The notes below the pieces were generated by a model, which was not told the DNA's origin, searched no databases, and saw nothing but the letters and a program-made list of their open reading frames with translations. A stretch of 63,933 nucleotides of DNA, filler included, from Choristocarpus tenellus KU-1152 (Eukaryota > Protista > Phaeophyceae): assembly GCA_964200185.2 (NCBI GenBank). It is 12 parts of 12 records of this genome, joined end to end, with 100 filler letters (N's around TTAATTAATTAA, not from the genome) between each part and the next. Parts side by side here need not be neighbours in the genome. Positions count along the whole stretch, not along the records: positions 1 to 9,527 come from CAXNAD020003604.1; 11 more parts are not named here. One strand, written 5' to 3'. Positions 1 to 9,527 of this stretch are shown piece after piece (the first letter of the stretch is position 1; the number at the start of each line of letters is the position of its first letter). Made by a program: the position numbers and the translations under genes.

Positions 1-69
1 CAAAAAATGCGACATAAAAAAATTGACCCCAAATAGACAACCGCCACCCCCTCCCAGATACTTTGAGCC
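1..69 (-). mobile_element. MITE family A, partial (cut by window start)
   Basis: Ends in cccagatactttgagcc; reverse complement of the left part of 935-1115. Confidence 0.85.
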
Positions 70-319
70 TCAAGGGGTTTTTCGCTCAACAGGTACGATA
101 AAGAAAGTATATGAAAAAGGAACCGAGATTTTCATACCCTTCTTTTTCAAAAATCCGTTGGTGTAATCCAAGGGTTCACATTCTTTTGCTCGATTCTCAG
201 CAAGAACTTGGCACACTATGAGGTCCTTTGCTGTTGAAGTAGGAGGACTTTCCTTGTACTTCTTTTTGTGGCTTGTCTGTAGCAGTCCCTGCTGTATTGT
301 CATCCTCGTCGAGATCATC

Positions 320-414
320 ATGTTAGGGCATTAGTAAACCCCTATGTCTACCTAGCAGGTAGTCAGGCTGACTACCTGCTAGGTAGACACAGGGGTTTAC
401 TAGTGTTCTAACAT
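320..414. repeat. Near-perfect inverted repeat (47-bp arms, 1-nt loop)
   Basis: atgttagggcattagtaaacccctatgtctacctagcaggtagtcag-g-ctgactacctgctaggtagacacaggggtttactagtgttctaacat. There are 4 non-Watson-Crick positions, 3 of them G:U-compatible on the + strand. Confidence 0.95.
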
Positions 415-934
415 ATCATGAAGAGAGTAAAAGTTGGTCTCCTCGGGCATGTAGCTGGATACGATGAAGTTGCCCGTCACCAGCGCAATACACCTATGTT
501 TGGTATACTTGTCCTTGATCCTCTCGATCATTTCCCGCTTTTAAACCCCATGGTGAGCACGGAGGGCCAGTCGGCAGGAGAGAGACTACACAGCATGACA
601 CGATGTTGGACAATTATTTGTGTGTGTAGTGGGGAGTGATGGGAGGATAAAAGATGTAAATCAAGTGGTCAAACGTGGTGGGGTGAATTTAATACAGTTA
701 CCTACTTGTAGTGTGTCCGTTGCAAACTTGGAAAGGGAATTGAGGTTTGCTTGTAACGTTGTGCCTGCATTCACCTTGATCTCTTCGTGCGAAATTCCTT
801 TCCAGTTCACTCTCCACAATGAGTGTATATGTGCTGATGAACTCATTTCAGGTTATCGTAACAGACTGTGAGTCCAGCATGTGAGGTCACTTCCCAGATG
901 GGGTGTTCCTTGGAGTAAGCAGTCGCACACTCCA

Positions 935-1115
935 GGCTCAAAGTATCTGGGAGGGGGTAGCGGCTGTCCATTTGGGGTCAATTTTTTCATATCACTATTT
1001 TTGTCTGATTTGGTTGCCATACGTCGGATGGATAATTCAAATGCACTTTTCCCGATTTTGGTTCAAATGGACACCCTCGTGTAGACCCCCCCCACTCCCC
1101 CAGATACTTTGGGTC
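935..1115 (+). mobile_element. MITE family A (~180 bp), full copy
   Basis: TIRs GGCTCAAAGTATCTGGG / CCCAGATACTTTGGGTC, 4-bp TSD TCCA (931-934, 1116-1119), at least 9 related copies in the window. Confidence 0.92.
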
Positions 1116-4100
1116 TCCACATCCAAGCTCTCTATACCAAAGGGCTCAATAAGGAGTTACAGGACATCAGGTAAGTAGGAGAGAGGAGAAGCATTTCTGG
1201 TGGTTGTCAACTCACAAGAGGAAGTTCATCATGTTGTAAAAACTCTCTTAGGGCAGTCTTGATCTAGCGACTATTTGGCGTGGCCCCCATTTCATCCGAC
1301 CACCTGTTTATGGTGCTCGTGTTATATAATTCAGTCCCTTGGCGGCCATCTTCATTGTCACTTGATGCACTGTGAATGACCGATTATCTGAGTTGATACT
1401 ACGTATTGCAGCCATTTTGGTTGGTGCAAGCTCTGAAGCCCGCCCACTACATGTCACCACCCCTAGGTCAAGCGTGTAGCCACGGGCGAGCTGATTGGCA
1501 ACGCCCTCCCAGAGCCCTCGCATCTAGCACTCGGACACTCCAAACTCCATTGCGAGGGCTGGCCCAACGTGTCGCAGCAGTTTATGTTCATCAGGGAGCA
1601 TCGTGAGGGCATGCCGCACTGCAAGTGCAACCCTGGTATTCAGGGATACTTGGGTACCCTTCCTATGCGGGGGGGTCAACAGGGGGCTTGCCATGCCAAC
1701 ATTCTGACCTCGACATGCCCAGTTCTGGCCTCAAAATCACTCCAAAAGACCCCCTACTTTGACGTATTGAAGCACCTTGAGTTTGTACCTGACGATCCTT
1801 GACCCCCACCTACTAAGAAAGCTGAGATTGTCAGTCCGATTTCATTCTATGGGGTTACCGTCCGATTCGGCGCCGTTCTCGCTCAGCGAGTCCAGATGTT
1901 TCACGGCACAAACTTATGTCACAGAAGTGGTATTTATTTCTCTTGTCTTACAGGTGATTGATCGCAAAGACGCAGGCATAGATACAAAGTGTATTACTTC
2001 TTTCTTCCTTCAAATATTTCCAGAATGCATGATGACAAAGGATTTTTTAAGTTTCAAAATTGTCCGCATCATCACTTCACTCACTTGTCCCAACAGTCAC
2101 ACGTCATTTCATTTTGTTTCAAGCGCCCTTAAGTAGTAGTAGACGATACTTAATGTACTTGGTGTGTTGCATGAGCTATAGTCGTAGTAGTTCTACCCAA
2201 CCTATAAACAAGAGCTGGCAGACTGGGGTCGCTTGGTAGGCCACTGGAAGTTGGGTATCTATGCACTAATGCCACCTTAGACAGCGGGAGTGAGATCACT
2301 CTGAGTAAGCGCTAATACATGTAACAATAGCAAGAAGAGTGATAAAGATTCTATCGAAACACAATTCAGAACATTAAATTAATGAGTAGGCATGACTGTC
2401 TGGGACGGATGCAAAACTTTCTAGGCACTCTCAAATAGTGTTAATATTTGGAAAGGGAGATTCAGTGGGCAGTCACTCACTTATCTAGAAAAAAAATCCA
2501 CAGTAAGAAATCGGAGGCGGGCAGAGTAGTGCGGATTAGTGTAATACTATACTGTTCCCCGAGAGGCACAACAGACTCCAAATATACTGTCAATATTTAA
2601 TACTTTTATGCAGTACTCCCCACAATAAAGCAGAACCCTACTATCAACACCAGCTGAAAAGGGGGTAGACTCCCTGTTTATTACTATGTTCCTGTTCATC
2701 GTGTTCTACTTCTCAGAACATGTCAGTAAGCGTACCTTTTGTTGCCCTGCACTGGTTTCAACCAGGAATGGCTTGGATGGTCAAAATAAATACGCCATCC
2801 TCTCTATGTTTCAAGTTTCACAAATAGCACAATGTACTACTACTGTAAACTCTGCCCACTTAAGTGGATGAGCTTCGTATCTTCGTTTTCGATGATCAAG
2901 TCAGTGAGTGTGGCAACCACCATAAATTGTACACCTGTCCATAAATTCCTTAGTACCACAACACAAAGAATAAGGGAAAACTGAAAGTAGGGTGGAATGC
3001 TTCCTTGTAGATCAATCCTCTTCTTAGCAAAGGTGACGAATACTAAGTAAGATTGGTCCGAGGAGGCAAGAGTAATTTGTGGTGAAATGACTGAACCAAA
3101 TGAGTCAAATGCAAGGAAATGCAAAGGGCAGAACAATTAATGGAATACGAGATGATTTACAGAAAAAAAGCTCATACCATGCGTCTTCAGGTTGGAAGAG
3201 TCCCCAGGCTAAAGTGAAAATAACAATGAGAATAAAGTCAAGTGCAACTGTAAGACATTATCAGTGTGGTAAAAACATCCAATTTGCAGGCAATATACTA
3301 AAATACAGAATGGAGTAGGAAAATAAACTGAAAATGAAAAACACTATAAAGTTCACAAATGATATCCTGTAACAAATATGTTGAATACTTGTAAGTACAA
3401 GGATTCAATCCATTCGAAGTCTTTGTTGGGAGCAGACCCACACAACAGTCTAATACCTACGAGTGCTTGTACCAATGATGTGGTCATTCCATGCTAGATG
3501 ACAAAAAATGGCAGTATCAAGCAAAGCATGGCCCAATCTGACACTTGTTTTAGATCGCCCAATCTTCAGGAATGAAGACTGAGCTGTGTAACGATCATTA
3601 GTGAGGCAGTTTTTGAGAAAAATTTAACAAATCAAAAAACATCAATATTCACATGAAAGGCTTCACTTCAATTCAACTGGTTTGATTCTCGCACACCTGC
3701 ACAATCTTTTTCATCTTTGATGCGTCATCTTCTTGCGCCCTGCTTATGCTATTTGTTGATTTCATGAAAATATTGAGTCAAAGCAATTTGTACACAGCAA
3801 ACCTTGCTCATCTGCAATCTACAACAATGCAATAAGCTCCACTTGCAAGTAACTACATGTAACACCTAACATGTCAATCAAGTCAGGTGACTCTTCTCGA
3901 ATTCACACACTGTGAGTTCAATTTGGTCTTAAACAAGCATAAATTTGTTAAAACACGATAGTAGTAGGCGCTTTCCACACACACTTGCCTTCAGTTGATA
4001 AAAAGAGAACCAAAACAAGGAGTTTTCCATACATGAAGAGGCAATTGAACCTACTCTACATCCAAATTAATCTTACCTTTCCGTAAGCTTCGTTTCATCC

Positions 4101-5086
4101 TACTGTAAGAGTACTTTGCGAATACAAAAAACTACATTGAGACAGATAAAATGCGTTTGGAACCCAACTCAGCTGATCAGTGAATCTGTTCAGCTACTGA
4201 GCACCACTTACGAAGTTTGTATCTCGGTGTGTACTTTAGTGCTATAATTAAAGAGTTGGAAAAAAAACTGTTTAAACACACATGACATGGCTCACCTCTC
4301 TCTGATATCAAGATTATGCATTCTATTCTTGTGCAAAACTAGTTTATGTTAAGAAACAACCAGTTTGTGGAAGAGAAGAGTTTGTAGTGTGAAGGTCAAG
4401 AGATAAGTATGGGTTAATGAACTAGAATATGGAAGAGTTGAGTAAGAACCACTGTAGCAAGCAATGCAAAATTCGTGATCACAGAATAAGATAGGTTTGG
4501 CAGTGAGGACACTCCCCCCCTGAGTTCAAAGGCTCACTACTCGTTTCATCTTAATTCATCTACAACCCATCTATCCCATGAAGGAATTAATTAAGTCATA
4601 TACATACAATTCTTGAGAAAAATTAGGTTCTTAAACACTTTTGTAGTTGGTAATGGGATCAGTACAAAATAGGAGACAAGCAAAAATAGAAACTCATGTA
4701 ACTCAGGTGTTATTACCCAAAATCAGCTAGGGAAAATGTAACAAAGCATACAAAAAACAACTTGGCAGAAATCAAATAACAATATAATCCTAGTACCATG
4801 CAAGTTGCAGGACAGAATATGCGGGAAGCTTTCGATAGAATGTTCACATGCTAGTGAAGGAGGCATGCTCTCAAAAAAAGCTGTTGCATTGTTTTCTTGA
4901 ATATATTTGTTTACAGAAGAATATCTGGTCGGGTCTTATTCTATCCTTGCCACACGCTTTTTAAGTGCCCTCTTGAAGAGCTACACAGGTAGCAGAGAGA
5001 TGGAAAAAATTGCCAACAGAAGCCCAGTAAACAAACTCAACCCAAAAACAGGACAGATACGGCTCCTCCCATCTACAGGACTGCTC

Positions 5087-7600
5087 TTAGAACTTCATCT
5101 CATGGGGCCTGTCTCCATTCTTGAGAGAGAACCTGGCAATGAGATATGCTTTGAGCATTGGCTCCGCAGTAATTGCCTTCAACAGTCCAGCGTCCACAGT
5201 TTTCTGGTCAGCCTTGCGCTGGTCAGATACCATGGACACCTGGAGAGAAATCAAAAACAGAAAGTTTGAATGGAATGGGAAGGGGGTAAGATGACTTGTG
5301 AAACGCGCCCACTCCGTAGAGCACCGTCTGTCGGTGGTGCCGGAGTGGGGCGTAGAAGAGACAAGGTTTAAGAGCGAATCAGTTGATGTCCAATATATTT
5401 GGAATACAACCTTGCTCATGTGTAGGAAGGTGAATCGCAGGCTCTTTTCACTTTACAATTGCTATTCAGCTACAAAAAAAAGTGTATGGAACGAGTGCCT
5501 CACCAAATGTTCTACTATTTACAGTACATCATGCACTATGTTGCAAATTACAATTTTTTCAAGTCAATAAATGATTTCCCTCTTCAGAGCTCACCTTCGA
5601 GTCCTGAGCAAAGAACTTGTCCTCATCCCCCTTTTTCTCTGCTTCCACACGTGCAAAGTACGAGTCGTCAATTTCCGGAATAGTGACACCCTCAAGGCTT
5701 ACCTTTACCGAGGTACCAATCACGTATGCCTGGTTTACCCGACGCAGGGGCACCCCATTGATCTTGTAGGGACCTGTGTAGGGGGAAACAGAGGGGGATC
5801 ACCGAGAGCTTGAGGGAAATTGTATCGCTGCATCTCGAGGTTGGATTTCCCCTCAACTTGACACAGAGGGGTGGGGATACATAGCACATATCTATGTTGT
5901 GTGAAGGATTTCACCTCAGTTCTCATAAGCATTTCGCATCCATCGGCTTCATCAACTGCCAGTCAAATCAAGTCAAGGACTCTACTTGGGGGAGAGTGAC
6001 CCCCACCATTGAGGCATGCATCTACCCCCAGCTGAGACAACCTGTCTTTACTGGCGAAGCCTCATGCGCTTATTTTTCATCACAGGAAAAATAAAAATGA
6101 TCACGTAGGGTCTAGAGATAAGTGGAATAAAATTTATCAAGCACTATTACTGTTTTGCTCTTCTCATGCTGTACTAATAATAAAACCTTTTCCAGCCTCC
6201 ACAAAAAAATCTTCTACCAACTATGCTATACCTAAGTGTCTTCCTGTTCCTCTTTTCTCATCACCATTTCTACAACTAATGCCTCCAAGAACTGGTCACA
6301 CCTGACTGAGACACTTTCAGAAGAAAGGGCACCACTATTATTGAGGCATGCGACCCCCCCTTACAAGATTAGGCCATCAACTTCCTTGTCATACGGAACT
6401 TTCCACACAAGAATCAACATTTAGAGTGCGAAAACTACTAATCCCTGTACAATACCATCAATAGCTTCTCTGCAAAAACGGGTCTTTCTGTTTCATAACA
6501 AGAAAGTTTTTTCCTAAGAATATGTACTGCCTTTCATGTCAGCTGATCTAGTCTACAAAAGAAAATATCACAACCATTTTGCTTCACTAGACGTTTTCCC
6601 TCAGTTCTCATAAGCATTTTCGCATCCATCGGCTTCATCAACTGCTGGTCGGATTCGGCCAAGACCGGTACAGAGGAAGGGGCACCCCCACCACTGGGGC
6701 ATACAGCTTCCTAAGGCGGGACTGAGCTAATAAGACCAGCGAAACCTCAAGCGCTTGATTTTCGTCATTGGGAGCTCGTCTCGAGGTATTCTTGACACTC
6801 ATAAAACCTCAGTTTACACTATCACAAAATCAAAATATTTGAAGGGAGCCTGTTTGACCAATAAGCATCCACAATACTGTCTGCCTAAGCCTTGTTTAAG
6901 GCTTCCCGTTCCACTCATCGTTCCAAGCTCAACTCGATCGGTTGATCCATTTTTGAAATAATACTTGAAAGTACGTCTGAATTCATTCGGGCAAAGAAAA
7001 GATCAGTGAGATCCGATCAATGAACTACAATTGCTATCCGAGTAGATCATGCCAAGAAGTGCAGGCAAAATCTCATACGAGGTATACTGCAAGAGAATAC
7101 CAAACCACAGGTCAACTTCTGGAATGTAATCCACGCCCGACATCCTTGACTGGTGGTATGTAGTCCATTAAACTCACCAGTGACGAGAAGAGTTCCAGAG
7201 CCGAGCTGCTTAAGGAATACCACTCTCTTGCCCCTAAAGCGTCCGGAGAGGAGGATTAGAATGGTTCCAGGTGTGATGGTGCTGCGGAGCTTTGTGGGAT
7301 TCGACTTCTGAGTCACCTTCACCTTCTTGACATCATCCGCTGAATACCATTTAGGGCCCTTGGTAACCTTGACAGTGGGTGCCTGAAACCTCAGACCGCG
7401 AGGGAGAGAACGGGTAGTTGTGAGTTCAAGAGGACACGCACCATCCACAAACATATTCCACTCACCCAGTACCTCACCACAAGACTTGAGTTAATCTTCC
7501 CAATCGTTAACTAAATGTATATACAATTGATAGAGAAACGCCAATTGATCACGCTATCTTTGAGACTCACCACTGCACCCGTGGTCTCAGCTTTTGTCAT
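5087..7600 (-). CDS. RPL6: 60S ribosomal protein L6 (eL6), 4 exons, 188 aa
   Basis: Exons 7571-7600, 7178-7382, 5595-5773 and 5087-5239, all GT..AG and phase-consistent (567 nt). Translation [103 protein letters not shown] carries the canonical eL6 motifs. Confidence 0.97.
5909..6090 (-). ncRNA. Intronic box C/D snoRNA/scaRNA, copy 1 (candidate tRNA-Met C34 guide)
   Basis: Lies in RPL6 intron 2 on the sense strand. Box C GTGATGA (6077-6083), box D CTGA (5916-5919), short terminal stem, D'-like ATGA and C'-like TTGATGA flanking a GCCAGT/ACTGGC stem. Paralog at 6596-6774. Confidence 0.8.
6596..6774 (-). ncRNA. Intronic box C/D snoRNA/scaRNA, copy 2 (candidate tRNA-Met C34 guide)
   Basis: Box C ATGACGA (6762-6768), box D CTGA (6601-6604), TCCC/GGGA terminal stem, GCTGGTC/GACCAGC internal stem. 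The 3' ~45 nt are nearly identical to copy 1. Confidence 0.8.
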
Positions 7601-8279
7601 GATGTCTGGGAAGAGCACTACTGTGACCACTAACCACCATTCACCCTATCATCACAAAATCTCGCGCGCTGTGCACGAGATTAGCATCAATGCGCGATGA
7701 ACGAACATCCTATCCCATCATGTTCATTTTGTATTTCAACCAAGGAAAAACAATAATGGAAAGGGAACCAACTCGATAATATCGCGATAAATCGGAAATT
7801 ACGAATCCATTTCAGAGTGTGGTAGGTAGGTTCTTAATGACACGTTGTGTCATAGTGGGTCCTTTTAGCAAACCCAAAGTTCTCTCAGCCATCAAATCTG
7901 TTTGAAGTTTGAATGGAATCTCGGATCCGATGGGTGACTTCACAATCTTGTGACCGTCGGCAAGCGGTCTGAGAATTCTCAAGAGTTCTTCTCTGTATTT
8001 GACGTGGATGTTGATGTGAACATCACCAATGACAGAAATGAGGGTGCAATGCACTTGTGCGTACACACGGATGTGGATTGGACTGAGATCACTTCCCAAC
8101 GGGACCTGTCCGTCATATTACCCCCATCCCAGTGTGTGCTCTGTCTGCACACGAGAAAAAAAACGGCTGGTGAGCACAGGCAGTCCCTTGGGAGAACAGA
8201 GAATGAATCATCTGGGGCATCCCAAGAATGTTCATTTAGCCAATTTGGAGGAGTTCCTTGAGGATCATTTTGGGTATCC

Positions 8280-8563
8280 GAGCCAAAGTAGCTTAGAGGG
8301 TAGAGCCAAAGTAGCTTAGAGGGTAGAGCCGCATCCATATGGAGGTTCGTATCTAATGTTGCGATGTTCGATGTAATTTTTGGCTATCGTGTTTATTAAG
8401 AAGTGTCAATATCTATGTTTCGGACACATCTTTTCATAACGTACACATCTTACCTACTCCTAAACATTTTGGAGTAGGAAAATGTCATTAAAAAAACTAT
8501 GGGAACCCAAGCCCAAAATGGACAAACAGGGCAAAACTCGTACCCTCTAAGATACTTTCACTC
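8280..8563 (+). mobile_element. MITE family B (~260 bp), full copy with duplicated left terminus
   Basis: TIR GAGCCAAAGTA(G)CTTAGAGGGTA present twice in tandem / TACCCTCTAAGATACTTTCACTC, TSD ATCC (8276-8279, 8564-8567). Confidence 0.9.
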
Positions 8564-9199
8564 ATCCCATAGATGTCAATGCCAATTTTGAGTTCCTTGA
8601 AAGGTCGTCCTCAACAAGGTTAGAACCCCAAAGTTGTTGATGGTGGAAAACATATTAGTATACCTTCAATCACCTGGGGTTACGTTATATATCCCAGGAA
8701 TTTTGGTACCAAAAAAGATTGCTTGGGTCATTATGATGATCAAGCTAGAATGCCTCGCCTAGTTTAATTGTAAATGGGAAAATATTGTCCCCTATTCTTG
8801 GTTATGGGTTGCGCTAGCCCGTGACAGATGTCCCAAGAGGGACCACACTGAGTCAGAGGGTTTTGAAGGAATTGGATCAGTACTTAACTTTTATGGGTGG
8901 ATCATTACCTTGAATTATTACCTTGCTTTCCTGGAAGCGACTGTTCATATATCTTGTCTCGTCAAGAAAGGGTTGTCCACTTCCACTCCGAAGAATATGT
9001 GTATACTGTCTAATCCTTCAGTTTGAAAGTGAAAATTCGTGGTGTTCTCACCGTCAGGTATTGTTGTTAGTAACCCTAATATCCGGAGTTCTGGAGTGAT
9101 GAGGTCGAGTTTTCTTCCAATTCCAATATTTTGGACTAAGTGGAGCAGAGACCATGTGCCTGCCTATAAGGAACACAGTCACCTCCCATTGGGTAAGCT

Positions 9200-9243
<44 letters not shown>

Positions 9244-9458
9244 CTTAAGGTGCCAAACCATTGAGAGGGCCGAGGGATCCCAATATTTTTCTGCTAAGGC
9301 AAAGGTTTCAAAACAATAAATGACAATTCCGAGTATTCACATCAATTACTCATTTTGCAGATAGGGTGAAATCAAGCTTGGAGATGAAAGAAGAGGTGCA
9401 TGGGGATCTTCTTACATTCGAAACTCGACAAAAAAGGGATAAGACCCTGACCACCCCA

Positions 9459-9527
9459 GGCTCAAAGTATCTGGGAGGGGATGGCGGCTGTCCATTTGGG
9501 GTCAATTTTTTCATGTCGCGATTTTTG
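9459..9527 (+). mobile_element. MITE family A, partial at contig end
   Basis: ggctcaaagtatctgggaggggatggcggctgtccatttggggtc runs into the N gap. Confidence 0.85.

Follow-up and report, generated by a model that had tools for sequence, protein, structure and literature searches.

We report that intron 2 of the ribosomal protein gene RPL6 of Choristocarpus tenellus KU-1152, a brown alga belonging to the PX clade of Ochrophyta, contains a tandem array of long box C/D RNAs, two of which are intact. The array lies in a stretch of 63,933 nucleotides (nt) from assembly GCA_964200185.2 (referred to as the window in the rest of the text), more precisely in its first part, a 9.5-kb contig (CAXNAD020003604.1, positions 1 to 9,527); positions given without a locus name are those of the window. 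The intact copies are almost certainly a conserved box C/D small nucleolar RNA (snoRNA). From their complementarity to the alga's own elongator transfer RNA (tRNA) for methionine, we predict with good confidence that this snoRNA guides 2′-O-methylation at C34, the wobble position of elongator tRNA-Met, in the manner of human SNORD97.

An initial annotation of this DNA had described two paralogs of about 180 nt on the host-gene strand of RPL6 intron 2. They measure 175 nt (copy A) and 174 nt (copy B) and lie on the minus strand. The tandem pair stands as two intact copies, but the array comprises three units that recur about every 335-350 nt, the middle one being a decayed unit that had been overlooked. 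The features of the array are given below in the order of transcription, guide nucleotides being numbered n1 to n11 upstream from box D.

6598..6772, minus strand: copy A, intact box C/D RNA of 175 nt, first of the array in the transcript (nhmmer E 1e-38)
6762..6768, minus strand: copy A box C, AUGACGA, with CCC at 6770-6772 before it
6747-6750 (within 6745-6754), minus strand: copy A D′-like UUGA, facing the C′-like element
6681..6704, minus strand: copy A central hairpin, conserved (helix 7, 98% of alignment cells paired)
6621..6633, minus strand: copy A C′-like element, GCCGAUGGAUGCG (helices 2 and 3, with compensatory changes)
6605..6615, minus strand: copy A guide n1-n11, GCUUAUGAGAA read 5′ to 3′, with n5 (G at 6609) opposite C34
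6601..6604, minus strand: copy A box D, CUGA, then GGG (6598-6600), the partner of the 5′ CCC
about 6248..6394, minus strand: decayed middle unit with mutated box C, guide and box D (nhmmer E 0.004)
5913..6086, minus strand: copy B, intact box C/D RNA of 174 nt (nhmmer E 4e-40)
6077..6083, minus strand: copy B box C, GUGAUGA, canonical
5996..6019, minus strand: copy B central hairpin, conserved
5920..5930, minus strand: copy B guide n1-n11, same as the copy A guide
5916..5919, minus strand: copy B box D, CUGA, with a terminal stem of just CC/GG

Both intact copies display the features of the box C/D class, namely a box C, a CUGA box D, a terminal stem and an intronic location in sense orientation, in agreement with the boxes (GUGAUGA and AUGACGA, CUGA) and the terminal stem first read in each copy. 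Their final 46-47 nt are the same but for one extra A and their middles have diverged, much as the initial annotation had it (about 45 near-identical nt at the 3′ end); overall, they are 71% identical in a 15-sequence alignment (see below). A single-stranded A-rich stretch precedes the guide in copy A. The middle unit has AUGUUGA in place of box C, GGUGAUGAGAA in place of the guide and AAGA in place of box D.

A pattern scan of the alga's own genome (164 Mb) detected one type of elongator tRNA-Met, encoded by 14 gene copies. All 14 share CUCAUAAGCC 3′ of the anticodon, and the four that were fetched in full are identical; ARAGORN calls them as an intron-less tRNA-Met(CAT). The anticodon arm of this tRNA reads GGUCUCAUAAGCC. 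Guide nucleotides n2-n11 form 10 contiguous Watson-Crick base pairs (bp) with U31-C40, and n5, a G, lies opposite C34, as expected from the fifth-nucleotide rule for C/D guides as stated in PMC6601510. The earlier proposal that the G five nt upstream of box D pairs with C34, and that pairing should span at least 9-10 nt around it, is therefore borne out on the organism's own tRNA-Met. Three of the paired positions, U31, G39 and C40, lie outside the 7-nt anticodon loop; all three were predicted from the guide and all three match in the tRNA. The other CAU tRNA found, which belongs to the C1 cluster described below and may be organellar, pairs with the guide over 7 bp only. Pairing was assessed at the level of the guide; prediction of whole snoRNA/tRNA duplexes gave meaningless long duplexes.

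Some of the elongator tRNA-Met genes occur in tandem: three on C11285 (3274-4476), 588 nt apart, and two on C16157 (2967-3454), 461 nt apart. A separate cluster on C1 (L006:886-1689), less than 800 nt across, contains tRNA-Ser(UGA), a CAU tRNA whose GGGCUCAUAACCC arm is initiator-like, and tRNA-Pro(UGG), and may be organellar or of bacterial type. The genome also harbours at least 13 copies of a repeat with CTCATAACCTGTGCAAAAGAGCTGTTCRA (e.g., L007, L008, L019, L022 and L034) that resembles the segment from anticodon loop to T-loop; ARAGORN did not call this repeat as a tRNA, and it may be tRNA-derived.

We next compared the intron with those of related algae. The RPL6 loci of relatives were reached via their proteins and the element was searched with nhmmer, giving a family of 15 sequences, copies A and B among them, from at least 11 sources. 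In every related genome examined, the element was found on the gene strand of the same RPL6 intron (nhmmer E 1e-7 to 1e-43), which puts its occurrence far outside what chance would yield. Discosporangium carries two copies that are 98% identical, while Sphacelaria, two Ectocarpus assemblies, Ascophyllum, Laminaria, four Logan assemblies and one ENA metagenome contig carry one copy each. One copy is also present in the same RPL6 intron of Phaeothamnion confervicola, which belongs to a different class, so that the orthologous-intron comparison called for at the outset shows the element to be kept across brown algae and Phaeothamnion. In Ectocarpus, Laminaria and Phaeothamnion, the element lies closely 3′ of the ..LLVTG|gtgagt donor. 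The nhmmer matches end at the CCC..GGG terminal stem, and the flanking intron sequence is unalignable between species. The 15 aligned family members range from 156 to 207 nt; none of them varies in the terminal stem or in the UGA core of box C, and box D is CUGA in 14 of the 15, Sphacelaria having CUGG.

The guide is the most telling part of this alignment. Nucleotides n1-n11 (GCUUAUGAGAA) do not vary among the 14 brown-algal sequences, in which CUGA follows (CUGG in Sphacelaria), but the two positions immediately 5′ of them do; conservation of the guide therefore ends where the tRNA duplex ends. The Phaeothamnion guide, AGAUUAUGAGAC, deviates from the brown-algal one at n1, n10 and n12 only, so that n2-n9 are the same throughout the 15 sequences. 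The complement of the Phaeothamnion guide, GUCUCAUAAUCU, is exactly what elongator tRNA-Met of animals and plants has at positions 30-41 (PMC6601510, Suppl. Fig. S4); that tRNA carries U39 and in this differs from the G39 of Choristocarpus. The part of the guide that faces U31-A38 is thus fixed in 15 of 15 sequences, and the changes fall at anticodon-stem positions. Since one and the same base cannot pair with C as well as with A at n10, a target identical across the two lineages fits worse than a tRNA stem position. In most species, n1 may be paired to the final base of box C. Taken with the pairing to the alga's own tRNA and the conservation of the intronic element, the restriction of guide variation to stem positions argues for the idea, put forward in the initial annotation, that RNA-guided wobble methylation of tRNA-Met would operate in a stramenopile.

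A DNA search with copy A and a scan for the guide-plus-box-D pattern revealed no further copy of the element outside the array locus in the Choristocarpus genome. The pattern had 16 other matches in this genome compared to 24 for the reversed control, and none of the 16 combines a box C with a terminal stem. One candidate for a second guide locus (L058:1340-1513, on C3262) has GGUUUAUGAGAA-CUGA, which forms 11 bp with tRNA-Met, one of them G-U, and 171 nt upstream an AUGAUGU that resembles box C; it has neither stem nor conservation and was judged a chance match. Likewise, a metagenome scan for the 18-nt guide plus box D plus stem returned three matches that showed no homology past the 18-mer and were attributed to chance.

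The interior of the RNA is structured. We ran RNAalifold on a 12-sequence alignment (A2) and assessed the helices, with the terminal stem added, using slid pairing partners and 500 shuffles as controls. The predicted fold consists of nested helices closing a large interior and a central hairpin. In this alignment, 90.7% of the cells are paired, compared to 33-47% with partners slid, and 17 pairs change on both sides, compared to 4-9 in the slid controls; none of the 500 shuffles reached the observed values in four of five measures, and 7 of 500 did so for further pair types. Helix 1, the terminal CCC/GGG stem, is paired in 100% of the cells. Even copies A and B differ from each other by compensatory changes, such as GCCAG/CUGGC versus GCUGG/CCAGC. 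Two of the helices that covary, P1 and P2, are separated by an asymmetric loop with xUGA, GA or UA on its 5′ side and GAUGA(G) on its 3′ side, the D′-like GA being replaced by UA in Ectocarpus, Laminaria and Phaeothamnion. Modelled in this way, the loop may be a C′/D′-type kink-turn (k-turn) in which the D′-like element faces the C′-like element, and the topology of the RNA would run from C over a short spacer to D′, then through some 115 nt of insert to C′, the guide and D. The central hairpin of about 24 nt is near-invariant in brown algae, not recognisable in Phaeothamnion and degraded at L048.

RPL6 itself was delineated exon by exon with a database protein (P0001), each exon being placed individually. 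The exon-2 part of the open frame is a 100% match to a partial Choristocarpus tenellus RPL6 protein in a protein search.

7600-7571, minus strand: RPL6 exon 1, first of four exons as read
7178..7382, minus strand: RPL6 exon 2, the end of which reads ..LLVTG
5774..7177, minus strand: RPL6 intron 2, host of the array (1404 nt, GT..AG; spliced junction in run X2)
5595..5773, minus strand: RPL6 exon 3, with a Pfam Ribosomal_L6e (L6e) match (E 1.6e-17)
5239-~5087, minus strand: RPL6 exon 4, last of four exons as read

Three public sequencing runs contain the stretch, two DNA-like (X1 and X3) and one RNA-like (X2), and we examined their contigs. In X2, the RPL6 exon bins reach depths of about 4,700 to 47,000, the whole of intron 2 is represented on one 1407-nt contig at a depth of 24.9, and a loose contig end at 5778 continues into exon 2, which corresponds to the exon2-exon3 junction. 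RPL6 is highly expressed and spliced as modelled, and its intron 2 is transcribed. In Ectocarpus sp. 4, the RPL6 span measures 4.4 kb and includes a called open reading frame (ORF) of 274 amino acids (L037:8887-9711) with no Pfam match; in a second Ectocarpus assembly the span is 2.8 kb and lacks this ORF, which was probably inserted into an intron farther downstream.

If these RNAs mature like other intronic snoRNAs, splicing of the RPL6 pre-mRNA would be followed by trimming of each unit to its CCC/GGG stem, releasing a stable RNA. Snu13, Nop56, Nop58 and fibrillarin would then assemble a ribonucleoprotein (RNP) both on the C/D k-turn and on the internal C′/D′-like k-turn, with the structured insert of about 115 nt lying between the D′-like and C′-like halves of the latter. 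Pairing of the single-stranded guide, directly 5′ of box D, with U31-C40 would then direct fibrillarin to 2′-O-methylate C34 of elongator tRNA-Met. We offer a broader scenario only tentatively, as we consider it somewhat less than an even prospect: guidance of 2′-O-methylated C34 (Cm34) would be ancestral in eukaryotes and derived from archaea; the PX-clade guide would have resided in one RPL6 intron since before brown algae and Phaeothamniophyceae split; brown algae would have changed U39 of the tRNA to G together with n10 from A to C; and the hairpin, specific to brown algae, would have been acquired as an extra module that serves tRNA docking or localisation. Were this true, n10 and position 39 would rank among the rare documented cases in which a snoRNA and a tRNA changed in compensation for each other.

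Several observations speak against a methylation guide of this kind. The X2 contig has a flat depth across intron 2, and no distinct RNA of 160-175 nt is resolved in it. Box C is off consensus in most species (AUGACGU, with C at position 5), both Discosporangium copies have GUGAUUU at box C (L036:6641-6651), and the Sphacelaria assembly has CUGG at box D (L039:1373-1376); the latter two may reflect errors of assembly, variants that are tolerated or copies in decay. With 10 bp, the pairing falls towards the short end of what eukaryotic guides use, and the covariation of guide and tRNA between lineages is predicted, not observed. No Rfam family, SNORD97 among them if represented there, was matched at E<1 by the Choristocarpus, Ectocarpus or Phaeothamnion elements. 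Finally, ribosomal DNA was not recovered from the assembly, which leaves room for a longer match in ribosomal RNA (rRNA).

This last point bears on the possibility that the RNA is a genuine C/D snoRNA whose true substrate is an rRNA or a small nuclear RNA (snRNA), the fit to tRNA-Met being coincidental. rRNA is indeed the substrate of most eukaryotic C/D guides. In the Choristocarpus assembly, a motif from the 18S 3′ end was found in two fragments only, one contig carrying no more than 70 nt of rRNA, and a universal 18S motif had no match. We nevertheless regard such a coincidence as unlikely: the chance that a random 10-mer matches exactly at C34 of tRNA-Met is about one in a million, and the exact 13-mer target has just three extra occurrences in 164 Mb, all outside RNA genes and consistent with chance. 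Moreover, the two guides differ at n1, n10 and n12, so that an invariant rRNA or snRNA target would keep just 8 bp in one lineage, whereas both fit a tRNA-Met anticodon arm, over 10 nt in brown algae and over 12 nt for the Phaeothamnion guide against the animal and plant sequence. Still less credible is a non-functional intronic tandem repeat with chance box-like motifs. The decay of one unit in a tandem array would suit such a repeat, as would the lack of direct evidence for a stable RNA from the array, but it is contradicted by the conservation of the element in the orthologous intron across two algal classes, with sharp boundaries, an invariant guide and compensatory changes.

Other proposals accept the snoRNA and concern what it does. 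The C/D RNP might bind elongator tRNA-Met, or some other RNA via the central hairpin, and yet have a main role other than C34 methylation, such as chaperoning, protection from anticodon cleavage or localisation. The near-invariant hairpin of brown algae, which has no assigned role, and a length two to three times that of an ordinary guide would accord with such a role, and human knockouts show more tRNA cleavage and no growth defect (PMC6601510). We consider this improbable as the main function, because the guide is placed as for methylation, directly 5′ of box D with C34 at n5, and is kept both in Phaeothamnion and at L048, where the hairpin is not. Equally doubtful is a division of labour in which copies A and B are split isoforms, nucleolar and Cajal body, like SNORD97 and SCARNA97. 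Two intact copies with diverged middles do exist, and they kept their boxes, guide and helices while the third unit decayed. However, A and B retain the same helices and hairpin, neither contains a pyrimidine-rich tract resembling the SCARNA97 signal, no further copy occurs elsewhere in the genome, and other species have a single copy in the RPL6 intron. In a phylogenetic tree, A groups with B and the two Discosporangium copies (Disco1 and Disco2) group together (support 93/92 and 94/93), indicating that duplication took place separately in the Choristocarpus and the Discosporangium lineage. The suggestion that the diverged middles route the two copies to different compartments is thus unsupported, given the shared helices and hairpin, the single copy of most species and the independent duplications.

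Guidance of C34 methylation places the algal RNA beside the human pair SNORD97 and SCARNA97, which are intronic and direct Cm34 formation on elongator tRNA-Met according to knockout evidence (PMC6601510). Like these, the algal RNAs are intron-encoded, sense-strand and unusually long box C/D RNAs (SCARNA97 measures 216 nt; PMC6601510) with a single conserved D-box guide that places C34 of the tRNA-Met anticodon loop at the fifth position, and in both cases the target tRNA-Met is intron-less. They differ in the host gene, EIF4G2 or LARP4 in human and RPL6 in the algae, and in their interior, which is G+C-rich and helical with a conserved hairpin in the algae and contains a pyrimidine-rich unstructured tract in human. 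The brown-algal n10 is C, matching G39, whereas the animal and plant tRNA has U39. Furthermore, the Choristocarpus pair arose by local duplication rather than being a conserved nucleolar/Cajal-body pair, and the algal function is predicted. The Rfam check proposed at the outset, run on the piece, the array and the Ectocarpus and Phaeothamnion elements, returned no family match; sub-threshold matches to archaeal sR41 (E 1.4-2.9) and to SNORD74 do not reach that level. Judged from its sequence, the algal RNA would be SNORD97-like by its function-defining features and cannot be filed in the SNORD97 family; without Rfam homology, the resemblance may stem either from common SNORD97 ancestry or from convergence.

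Archaea, too, use box C/D small RNAs (sRNAs) to direct Cm34 formation on elongator tRNA-Met (Joardar et al. 2011, cited after PMC6601510), and archaeal tRNA guides are typically single-guide (PMC7994747). The algal RNA shares with them the target nucleotide, the fifth-nucleotide rule, the use of one guide of two for tRNA and a short spacer between box C and the D′-like element. The archaeal sRNAs are distinguished by a length of about 50-70 nt, the absence of an internal insert, a location outside protein-gene introns and assembly with aFib, Nop5 and L7Ae. Among eukaryotes, Vitali and Kiss (2019, PMC6601510, Suppl. Fig. S3C) listed SNORD97/SCARNA97 candidates with one gene each in insects, Ciona, Arabidopsis and rape, and a 2026 review describes the situation in plants as still unknown (PMC13578239). 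These candidates resemble the algal RNAs in being single-copy predicted tRNA-Met guides, and the Phaeothamnion guide complements the same GUCUCAUAAUCU; none comes from stramenopiles, and they are set beside the algal RNAs by description only. Compared with ordinary snoRNAs of ribosomal-protein introns, the algal family likewise resides in a highly expressed gene of the translation machinery, with several units per intron, a layout also seen in the intronic snoRNA clusters of plants, where one intron carries several units. The ordinary snoRNAs target rRNA and are much shorter; the algal family has a predicted tRNA target.

Our literature searches found no report of such a guide in brown algae or in any stramenopile, and the brown-algal RNA family annotated here has no description in the literature searched. 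The novelty tentatively suggested by the initial annotation holds to that extent, but is reduced by the non-vertebrate candidates already presented in PMC6601510. At present, eukaryotic snoRNA-guided tRNA methylation rests on one experimental case, in human cells, dating from 2019. A deeply conserved guide that stays in the same intron and tracks its tRNA in stramenopiles would favour an old and widespread mechanism over an animal peculiarity, and would carry a mechanism so far demonstrated in human cells and archaea into a further major lineage of eukaryotes. The prediction that follows is G39 in brown-algal elongator tRNA-Met and U39 in that of Phaeothamnion. Ectocarpus, with one copy in a defined intron, offers a clean genetic test system.

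Other features of the 9.5-kb contig touch neither RPL6 nor its array. A near-perfect 59-nt hairpin at 339-397 has a sub-threshold Rfam match to mir-24 (33 bits, E 1.9e-4, gathering score 50) and probably represents an inverted repeat, not a microRNA. An (AT)n microsatellite at 9190-9255 accounts for several spurious microRNA and virus-element matches in Rfam. Lastly, the ORFs at 23-166 (plus strand), 853-1020 (minus strand) and 9350-9514 (minus strand) have a common ..PNGQPPPPPRYFEPGV.. motif, which points to a dispersed repeat present in at least three copies in this contig.

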